Shown one piece after another: positions 50,132 to 51,212 of a DNA stretch of 64,000 nt. Made by a program: the position numbers and the translations under genes. A model generated the notes under the pieces. It searched no databases and was not told the DNA's origin. It saw only the letters and a program-made list of their open reading frames with translations. Position 1 is the first letter of the stretch. Every line of letters begins with the position of its first letter. The stretch spans positions 248,001-312,000 of the IMG/VR virus record IMGVR_UViG_3300047319_001872, one strand, 5' to 3'.

Positions 50132-50907
50132 CAGTTCCACCGATCGCGTTTTCTGTTCTTGGGCAAGGCGGGCCGCCGGGAGCTTTTCCCAGGGTTATTC
50201 ACCTCGAATGCGGGCATAGCGTGTACAACTTCTGCCAAGCCCAATGGCTCGACGTCACTTCTCATGGGATGCACCATCCCAGTAAGTTTTTCCAGGATGT
50301 TGCGCTCACTCATCCCGCGACCGCGCAGTTCTGACTTCAGTTCATCCTGGGTCGCGACCACGATAATGGGTAGATCTGATTGCCTAAGCAGATGCGTGAC
50401 GTGATTCCGAATCAGCATGTGCTCGTCAATATAGAGGATGGGGAGATCCTTTCGATCCAGGCGCCGCAGCATTCCATCTCCATCTGCTTCCACCACGGCC
50501 TTGAGAATATCCTTGACAATCTTCTCATCCGCGGGATCAAGCGCATGCAAGGGGGTGTCGAGTGCGACCTGGAGATCGGAGACGTCCAGACCCGACCGGT
50601 ACTCTACCTTAGTCTCAACTAGGAGCAGGTGCTTTTCCATCCCCTGAACAGGCCGTACACTGTAAGCTTCGATCACAAAAGGCGTCTTGCCTGGCGATTG
50701 CATTATGAACGGATCACGCCATGCACCCTTCTCGTGAGAACTCAGTCGCATTACAACTTGACCGCCCAGCTCAATGTCGACGTGACTGACAGATTGATCG
50801 ATCGGCGCACGGAGTTGTTGCTGGACATGATCAACGATCGCCACAATCCCATCGCCGTATTCCTGTACGATTGAGCGATAGAAGCCAGACTGTTCCGAAT
50901 CGGTCAT
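50131..50907 (-). CDS. Hypothetical protein
   Basis: MTDSEQ... starting at ATG 50907 with RBS GGAGG. Confidence 0.7.
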   Translation of the reverse strand: MTDSEQSGFYRSIVQEYGDGIVAIVDHVQQQLRAPIDQSVSHVDIELGGQVVMRLSSHEKGAWRDPFIMQSPGKTPFVIEAYSVRPVQGMEKHLLLVETKVEYRSGLDVSDLQVALDTPLHALDPADEKIVKDILKAVVEADGDGMLRRLDRKDLPILYIDEHMLIRNHVTHLLRQSDLPIIVVATQDELKSELRGRGMSERNILEKLTGMVHPMRSDVEPLGLAEVVHAMPAFEVNNPGKSSRRPALPKNRKRDRWN

Positions 50908-51212
50908 TCCCACCACCTCCCTTTCTTATAGCGTGAGCCGGACTTCGGTCCATTCCGGCGCTTCTTCTTGCCCCGACGTTCATCGCGCGTCCGATAGTCC
51001 TGCATCGGGCCTTGGTTCATGTTGGTGTACGTTTTGGGTTCCGCAGGAGCGTTCCCATACAGCGACATCGAACTGGTATCTTGCGCAGCAACCGCAGCAT
51101 TCAGCGCCGCCAGTTGCATCAGCATGCGAGCCCGGCTGCGAGTACTGCCTGGACTATAGTGAGCGATCGTGCCCACGTTGATGTGGGGCTTGGTGCGTTC
51201 GAACTTAGCCAT
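50904..51212 (-). CDS. Small basic protein with an EF-Tu-like N-terminus
   Basis: Begins [18 protein letters not shown]. RBS-like GAGGGG upstream. Tightly coupled to the genes on both sides. Confidence 0.75.
   Translation of the reverse strand: [102 protein letters not shown]

Follow-up and report, generated by a model that had tools for sequence, protein, structure and literature searches.

An EF-Tu N-terminal segment under residue-level selection opens a mini-protein encoded in the chimallin locus of jumbo phages

Results

A phage mini-protein begins with the N-terminal segment of EF-Tu

The window analysed here, a stretch of 64,000 nucleotides covering bases 248001-312000 of the 313,315-bp virus record IMGVR_UViG_3300047319_001872, which carries direct terminal repeats, encodes on its minus strand a mini-protein of 102 amino acids (50904-51212; ATG at 51212-51210, TGA at 50906-50904) that opens with the N-terminal segment of bacterial elongation factor EF-Tu. 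This short head is held constant residue by residue across a family of jumbo phages while the nucleotide-binding loop behind it has been lost, and what the data favour is a peptide that something recognises by its sequence. The initial annotation of the window had listed the open reading frame (ORF) with no strand stated; the ORF exists, and its translation agrees exactly with the one quoted there.

Residues K3-H18 (51159-51206, minus strand) correspond to residues 4-19 or so of EF-Tu with 14 of 16 identical, as had been stated, and phmmer and the NCBIfam profile TIGR00485 (EF-Tu) place this similarity well above chance. Searched against all PDB sequences with phmmer, the mini-protein matched EF-Tu chains only (E 3e-6 to 1e-4), in alignments that start at residue 2 and end at residues 36-67, and TIGR00485 matched with E 2.8e-6 and 26.3 bits against a cut-off of 522.4. 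The sequence following the 16-mer had been described as unrelated to EF-Tu; the homology instead fades gradually, with HMMER alignments reaching residues 43-67, and the description holds for the last ~40 residues, which form a different module. The tail is very basic and the P-loop is broken, AHYSPGST replacing GHVDHGKT, both as originally noted, and relatives carry the remnants GHVSNGRTSL and GH[IV]NPNGRTSL at the position of the EF-Tu P-loop. The extent of the HMMER alignments together with these remnants indicates that approximately the first 45-60 codons descend from tuf. Three parts can be delimited on the minus strand: the head, defined by the alignment, the codon table and the ratio of nonsynonymous to synonymous substitution rates (dN/dS); residues 19-59 (51036-51158), a decayed P-loop with a remnant of helix alpha-1 and switch I, visible in the HMMER alignments, in dN/dS and in the AlphaFold2 (AF2) model; and residues 60-102 (50907-51035), a conserved basic C-module with no relation to EF-Tu, recognised from the alignment, dN/dS and a comparison with the relative P0021.

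Over residues 3-58, bacterial tuf genes reach at most 50% identity with the mini-protein and no lineage stands out as clearly nearest. The N-terminus of some relatives resembles that of a minority of tuf genes, for example in a Rhodocyclaceae genome, and the MAKGK start is consistent with, though not proof of, a betaproteobacterial tuf donor.

On account of its score, P-loop and domain content, the mini-protein falls outside the EF-Tu family. Beyond the head the similarity is weaker and ends at about residue 45-60, and compared with the ~395 residues of EF-Tu the mini-protein lacks the Walker-A Lys, Asp21, the G2-G5 motifs and domains II and III. It does not match the Walker-A/G1 pattern GxxxxGK[ST], a position that is variable in the family, with Lys changed to Ser, Arg or Gly, and Pfam GTP_EFTU gave no match at E<=1. 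When all six frames of the entire 313-kb phage were searched with PF00009, nothing was found at E<=10, so the head is not one half of a split factor whose G-domain remains elsewhere in the genome, and the protein encoded by the coupled downstream gene has no GTPase similarity. Judged from sequence, a GTPase and a split EF-Tu can both be regarded as excluded.

A phage-restricted family occupies a constant slot in the chimallin locus

A word-indexed search of 5.8 billion proteins returned 14 homologs of 102-109 amino acids (E 1e-58 to 6e-22, aligned over 98-100% of the length, identity down to 48%). A profile search added P0015, P0016, P0017 and P0021, its other matches being fragments of real EF-Tu, and among 1.84 billion cluster representatives it found only about eight related clusters. 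All ~20 relatives have kept an intact reading frame. No family member occurs in 185,579 bacterial and archaeal species, each represented by one genome, where only genuine tuf genes were found; the family is restricted to phages.

The window phage encodes chimallin, the shell protein of the phage nucleus (636 amino acids, 46688-48598, minus strand; PF25677, E 2.6e-55), 2.3 kb downstream of the mini-protein gene and on the same strand, which identifies it as a nucleus-forming jumbo phage. The cultured phage most closely related to it is Burkholderia phage FLC9 (host B. glumae, a rice pathogen), whose chimallin is 80% identical and which encodes an annotated homolog of the mini-protein, gp386 (BDD79905.1). 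The mini-protein belongs to an unnamed gene family of FLC9-like chimalliviruses. In every member with genomic context the gene lies in the same slot, in the order divergent DNA polymerase gene, reversed 378-amino-acid gene, small ORFs, mini-protein gene, two genes, chimallin and RNA-polymerase subunit, an order shared by FLC9 and eight metagenomic contigs. Two strong hairpins on the minus strand of the window, one terminator-like with a 16-bp stem after the divergent DNA polymerase gene (54322-54357) and one intrinsic-terminator-like with a 12-bp stem and T-run after chimallin (46613-46640), flank a series of tightly packed minus-strand ORFs of which chimallin is the last; amid this span the 378-amino-acid gene alone runs on the plus strand. 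The mini-protein gene, placed between the two hairpins, lies in the chimallin transcription unit, upstream of which the first hairpin stands and which the second closes, and this layout suggests that it may be expressed early and highly along with chimallin.

The mini-protein ATG stands immediately after the TAG of an upstream small ORF. At the other end, the final codons AAA GGG AGG TGG TGG GAA TGA supply a Shine-Dalgarno sequence and an ATGA stop/start overlap with the downstream gene (AAAGGGAGGTGGTGGGAATGA, 50904-50924, minus strand), seen in the sequence, the codon table and the synonymous substitution rate (dS), and this 4-nt overlap is kept in relatives. The gene is translationally coupled to both of its neighbours. 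The ESM Atlas entry for the mini-protein begins at residue 30 read as Met (window position 51125), which means that at least one gene caller began the ORF downstream and lost the EF-Tu head; Met30 is variable within the family.

The head is constrained as a peptide

A codon alignment of 11 genes was used for estimation of dN/dS by the Nei-Gojobori method. The head 16-mer gives a dN/dS of 0.030 at a dS of 1.30, that is, with synonymous sites saturated, while the fast-evolving former P-loop and helix of residues 19-59 give 0.20 and the C-module 0.12. In the family alignment K3-H10, V13-I16 and H18 are invariant, changes in the head are limited to V/I, N/S and G/A, and 11 of the 13 fully invariant positions are written with two or three different codons among the 11 genes. 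Invariant residues combined with saturated synonymous sites indicate that the head is translated and that the constraint on it acts on the peptide rather than on DNA or mRNA. The former P-loop varies so freely that GTP binding cannot be the selected function. Between these phages the mini-proteins are only 52-67% identical overall, compared with 80-93% for the chimallins, and yet the head is invariant. The last seven codons stand apart with a dS of 0.55, against 1.3-2.8 elsewhere, because they overlap a ribosome-binding site. The view that this is a captured EF-Tu fragment kept for a function, put forward in the initial annotation, is thus supported by conservation of the 16-mer at the protein level in a family whose identity elsewhere drops to ~50%.

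These data also bear on the idea that the gene is a decaying, functionless remnant of an accidental tuf capture, which we consider barely credible. Such a remnant would be in keeping with the destroyed P-loop, with the drift of most of the EF-Tu-derived sequence and with the occurrence of one relative with a degraded head and one without a head, but the frame is intact in the ~20 relatives, dN/dS is as low as 0.03 in the head and 0.12 in the C-module, and slot and coupling are conserved across phages whose synonymous divergence is saturated; with dS above 1, the alignments do not stem from near-identical genomes. A functionless remnant, like a signal at the nucleotide level, is therefore contradicted by the selection data.

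The mini-protein is modular and predicted to be largely disordered

P0021 (176 amino acids, locus L044, same slot) contains a C-module 55% identical to residues 63-102 in a headless protein, and its front is a Zn-ribbon domain 54% identical to the product of the window ORF at 51475-51759, two genes upstream of the mini-protein gene. The occurrence of the C-module without the head shows the mini-protein to be modular, composed of a tuf-derived head and an independent basic module. Locus L045 joins the Zn-ribbon to a generic GNAT acetyltransferase, and the latter overlaps the beginning of the mini-protein gene (fusions at L044, 6001-6531, with the C-module, and L045, 5355-6020, with GNAT). The Zn-ribbon-like domain is mobile, standing alone in the window and fused in L044 and L045, and the fusions suggest a possible functional link among these small early proteins. 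A connection to RimI-type N-acetylation was considered and rejected, as the L045 GNAT is generic (RimI E 2.6e-4, 21 bits against a cut-off of 86); it has no counterpart in the window phage.

AF2 run with the family alignment returned a model with a predicted local distance difference test score (pLDDT) of 58, in which residues 1-23 are coil (pLDDT ~55-65), residues 24-46 form a helix and residues 76-86 a short basic helix. The mini-protein is accordingly predicted to be largely disordered, and with residues 1-23 modelled as coil there would be no fold to bury the strand that this segment contributes to EF-Tu. A resemblance of the tail to the ribosome rescue factor ArfA found no support: no family member matches PF03889 at E<=10, there is no similarity in the PDB, and the Atlas feature match to an ArfA-containing cluster, at 0.55, is at chance level.

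EF-Tu heads recur in unrelated phages

Phages in IMG/VR and GenBank were scanned for the EF-Tu head. The match in Moraxella Mcat7 and many of the IMG/VR matches were discarded as host tuf at prophage or contig edges, and the scan also returned full-length tuf within large contigs. Head ORFs of ~70 amino acids with the tail SYPxERFNKRAVYSRGK immediately precede YbcO, RusA and Q-like genes at loci L014 (5980-6207), L029 (~487-696) and L033 (~5974-6189), and L028 (5944-6528) and L030 encode the head and a YbcO nuclease domain (PF07102, E 3e-44) as a single fused protein. ORF27 of Aaphi23 (YP_003955.1; L051, 2498-2677) and its counterpart in Aggregatibacter phage S1249 have 59 amino acids and lie in the nin region; VPDG_00052 of Vibrio phage henriette 12B8 (L052, 2489-2668), likewise of 59 amino acids, is found among nucleotide-metabolism genes, and P0089 of Vibrio phage 150E35-1 (L049, 2492-3211) has 239. 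At L026 (1-120) the head is cut exactly after GTIG and is followed by eight unrelated residues, a stop, a GC-rich hairpin and a 733-amino-acid ORF. Lying at one end of a 6-kb viral contig of high GC content, this may represent either a further very small head ORF or a junction within tuf.

In these unrelated phages the heads always occupy the extreme N-terminus, follow the local host form and keep the P-loop, and the tails are mutually different, mostly basic and Trp-containing. What they share with the jumbo-phage family is essentially the pattern F-x-R-T-x-P-x-x-N-V-G-x-I-G-H, placed right at the N-terminus; they give the impression of independent captures rather than of orthologs. Some head mini-ORFs of temperate phages, such as Aaphi23 ORF27, to which the L014 and L028 types are related, are grouped in phrog_27465, a 59-position profile listed as of 'unknown function'. 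It matches the mini-protein with E 1.5e-4, placing residues 3-25 on profile positions 5-27 of 59 only, and since it also matches real tuf in 14 of 14 control genomes it recognises the head and not a distinct family. The likeness is that a short phage ORF opens with an EF-Tu N-terminus and continues into a short basic tail; the ORFs of the PHROG 27465 type differ in having an intact P-loop GHVDHGK, a change of H11 to Y or V, unrelated tails and a location in the lambdoid nin region.

Full-length EF-Tu-like genes with frames of 413-429 amino acids were also seen in viral contigs of 50-497 kb (L022, 5938-7176; L034 and L036, 5902-7164; and L031, L032 and L035), some with unusual N-termini (MTQKQHINVGTIGH). 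Either EF-Tu encoded by the phages or contamination with host DNA could account for them.

The position of the head at the very N-terminus in every lineage raises the possibility of an expression leader, in which the tuf start would aid initiation and early elongation of the gene itself and, through coupling, of those downstream, the peptide having no partner. The coupling of the next gene by an in-frame Shine-Dalgarno sequence and ATGA overlap would fit, as would the fusion of the head to an otherwise ordinary YbcO nuclease at L028. A leader acting through the mRNA predicts the opposite of a saturated dS of 1.3 with 16 positions fixed in residues, however, and effects of the nascent peptide on early elongation would not be expected to extend as far as residue 18. 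Moreover, the ribosome-binding site comes from the upstream phage ORF, whose TAG abuts the ATG, and no tuf 5' untranslated region is present. The borrowed high-expression 5' leader offered in the initial annotation is disfavoured by these observations, and we judge it improbable.

The recurrence of the head bears equally on the last of the functions suggested there, an immune elicitor in a plant-associated host habitat, acting like elf18 or interfering with plant EFR sensing. The first 18 residues of EF-Tu constitute the plant elf18 epitope, and the EFR elicitor is this 18-mer with an acetylated N-terminus. The head overlaps the elf18 sequence as given in plant papers, the DNA of the phage is found again in many rhizosphere metagenomes, and its nearest cultured relative infects a rice pathogen. 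Similar heads are nonetheless carried by phages that infect oral Aggregatibacter and marine Vibrio, which means that an explanation specific to plants cannot apply generally. The core sequence of the EFR elicitors is present in the mini-protein with the two residues preceding KFERTKPH missing, which makes the N-terminal spacing different from that in EF-Tu; nothing else at the locus is plant-related, and a lytic phage would have no evident gain. We consider such a role very improbable.

Neighbouring genes

The coupled downstream gene (50131-50907, minus strand; 258 amino acids from the ATG at 50907) encodes a protein that ends in a conserved basic tail, SRRPALPKNRKRDRWN, has no family match in the profile libraries and is modelled by AF2 with a pLDDT of 56. 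Among relatives this protein measures 135-276 amino acids, with a conserved C-terminal half and the basic tail, and the end of the gene that encodes the tail overlaps the start of the following gene. The upstream small ORF whose TAG abuts the mini-protein ATG (51213-51482, minus strand; 89 amino acids from the GTG at 51482) also lacks a family match in the profile libraries and shows, by eye, two hydrophobic stretches that may indicate membrane character. The Zn-ribbon-like ORF at 51475-51759 (minus strand) encodes a Cys/His-rich product of 94 amino acids that is fused to other domains in relatives.

The conserved neighbourhood is what one might expect if the head binds a phage partner, such as the coupled downstream protein, the Zn-ribbon neighbour or a component of the nucleus or virion, its EF-Tu origin being a historical accident followed by co-evolution. 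Consistent with this are the coupling by ATGA overlap conserved in all relatives, the fusions that join the Zn-ribbon neighbour to the C-module (P0021) and to a GNAT beside the gene (L045), and the constant slot in the chimallin unit. An interface of this kind should drift, but the head stays EF-Tu-identical while the partner genes fall to 36-58% identity, and unrelated phages with other neighbours keep the same head. A phage partner therefore seems to us quite unlikely.

Three further features of the locus can be recorded. The 378-amino-acid gene (53175-54311, plus strand) is conserved in all relatives and runs opposite to the surrounding early-looking genes; it matches phrog_3938 (E 1e-80) and, weakly, a virion structural protein family. 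An ORF of 205 amino acids resembling HNH-type homing endonucleases (48719-49336, minus strand; phrog_2081, E 5.7e-13) lies between a 214-amino-acid gene and chimallin; L039, L040, L043, L044 and L047 have no called ORF at this site, and as their gaps of ~270-415 nt are too short for it, it looks like a recent insertion beside chimallin. Finally, tRNA genes are absent from the window and from the loci of the relatives, for which reason hitch-hiking with a tRNA-tuf operon was rejected as the source of the head. A prophage att-site or host DNA was likewise rejected, the record being a complete lytic-type jumbo phage with terminal repeats.

Discussion

We tentatively propose, as a possibility that falls somewhat short of probable, that the mini-protein is an early-made, disordered mimic of the EF-Tu N-terminus that competes for a host factor and stays attached to RNA or ribosomes through its basic tail. 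The head comes from a bacterial tuf gene, of which only the N-terminal arm and first beta-strand (KFERTKPH[VI]NVGTI[GA]H) remain under selection, and the Lys/Arg-rich tail is older than the head or independent of it. The exposed head would act as a linear-motif mimic, vying with host EF-Tu for a host factor by which this segment is bound or modified, for example a modifying enzyme or an immune effector directed at translation. The tail would tether the mini-protein to RNA or to the ribosome, where EF-Tu works, and the net effect would be that translation is kept going for the phage. PhiKZ014, an early chimallivirus protein discussed below, is the closest functional precedent for such a role. 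Of the functions listed in the initial annotation, the mimic or decoy and the ribosome-associating factor appear to fit best.

Viruses are known to mimic their hosts by means of captured host fragments or short linear motifs. The mini-protein resembles such cases in that a short host-derived peptide is kept under purifying selection in a viral protein predicted to be disordered, and if our proposal is right it would be a case of viral mimicry by a captured host fragment.

Several observations weigh against this proposal. The head can be lost in some lineages, since P0016 has a degraded head (KFQRTKPHASVGTLG) and is missing the helix, and P0021 has no EF-Tu head. In folded EF-Tu, residues 10-18 are a buried strand, so that a partner of mature EF-Tu would see only about half of the motif. 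The C-module profile has no match in the PDB at E<=10 and none in Pfam, ArfA and the ribosomal proteins included, and part of the conservation of the C-module is due to the overlapping Shine-Dalgarno sequence. In the literature we found no bacterial factor that recognises the N-terminal peptide of EF-Tu in a phage context. With regard to expression, the locus is present in DNA runs only, and the single RNA run covers just 51159-51207. The overhangs of that run encode MAKGK and VDHGKT, which identifies the signal as bacterial tuf mRNA, and the metatranscriptome depth of tuf cross-mapping on the head is very high; short-read expression estimates of the mini-protein gene would therefore be contaminated by host tuf. 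Metagenomic contigs of tuf mRNA and DNA also map onto 51159-51207, with 1-7 mismatches in 36-49 nt.

The basic tail could also point to the mini-protein being a ribosome or RNA factor itself, whose tail binds the ribosome or tRNA and whose head contacts the EF-Tu site, so that elongation is modulated directly. This explanation, which partly overlaps with the proposed mimicry, we regard as unlikely. It is in agreement with the very basic and conserved character of the tail, with the conserved basic tail at the end of the coupled downstream protein and with the basic, Trp-containing tails of the independent phage versions. There is also a precedent in PhiKZ014, an abundant, ribosome-binding early protein of the chimallivirus PhiKZ, which the phage cannot do without only in strains where translational shutdown aborts the infection (PMC10914614). 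In a profile search the window phage was found to lack a PhiKZ014 homolog (PHROG 16056), and the mini-protein might be its functional analog, an early chimallivirus protein acting on the host translation apparatus; the likeness would be one of role, since PhiKZ014 of Pseudomonas phage PhiKZ folds into several domains, clamps 5S rRNA and bears no sequence relation to the mini-protein. On the other side, the tail profile finds neither ArfA nor any ribosomal protein among PDB and Pfam entries, and the Atlas match to the ArfA-containing cluster does not rise above chance. We also know of no role for the N-terminal arm of EF-Tu in ribosome contact.

If the mimicry proposed above is correct, it may extend beyond the FLC9-like phages. 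EF-Tu surpasses all other bacterial proteins in abundance, and toxins as well as phage-exclusion systems are known to target it. The literature we searched contains neither a description of phage proteins with EF-Tu N-termini nor an explanation of why a phage preserves the first 18 residues of EF-Tu while discarding its catalytic loop. The presence of similar mini-proteins in unrelated phages, temperate and lytic, with hosts from soil, the oral cavity and the sea, argues for a general interaction of the EF-Tu N-terminus. It is conceivable, though we remain doubtful, that EF-Tu-head mini-proteins constitute a convergent, undescribed class of phage effectors, the start of tuf having been captured again and again by unrelated phages because a widespread host factor reads the N-terminal segment of EF-Tu. 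Such a factor would be an immune effector or sensor that monitors or shuts down translation, or an enzyme that modifies EF-Tu, and an abundant, disordered, basic peptide displaying the segment would neutralise or hijack it. A cultured pair is available in FLC9 and Burkholderia glumae, with gene gp386, and the identity of the partner could reveal an anti-defence strategy, a means by which nucleus-forming phages steer host translation, or new biology of EF-Tu.

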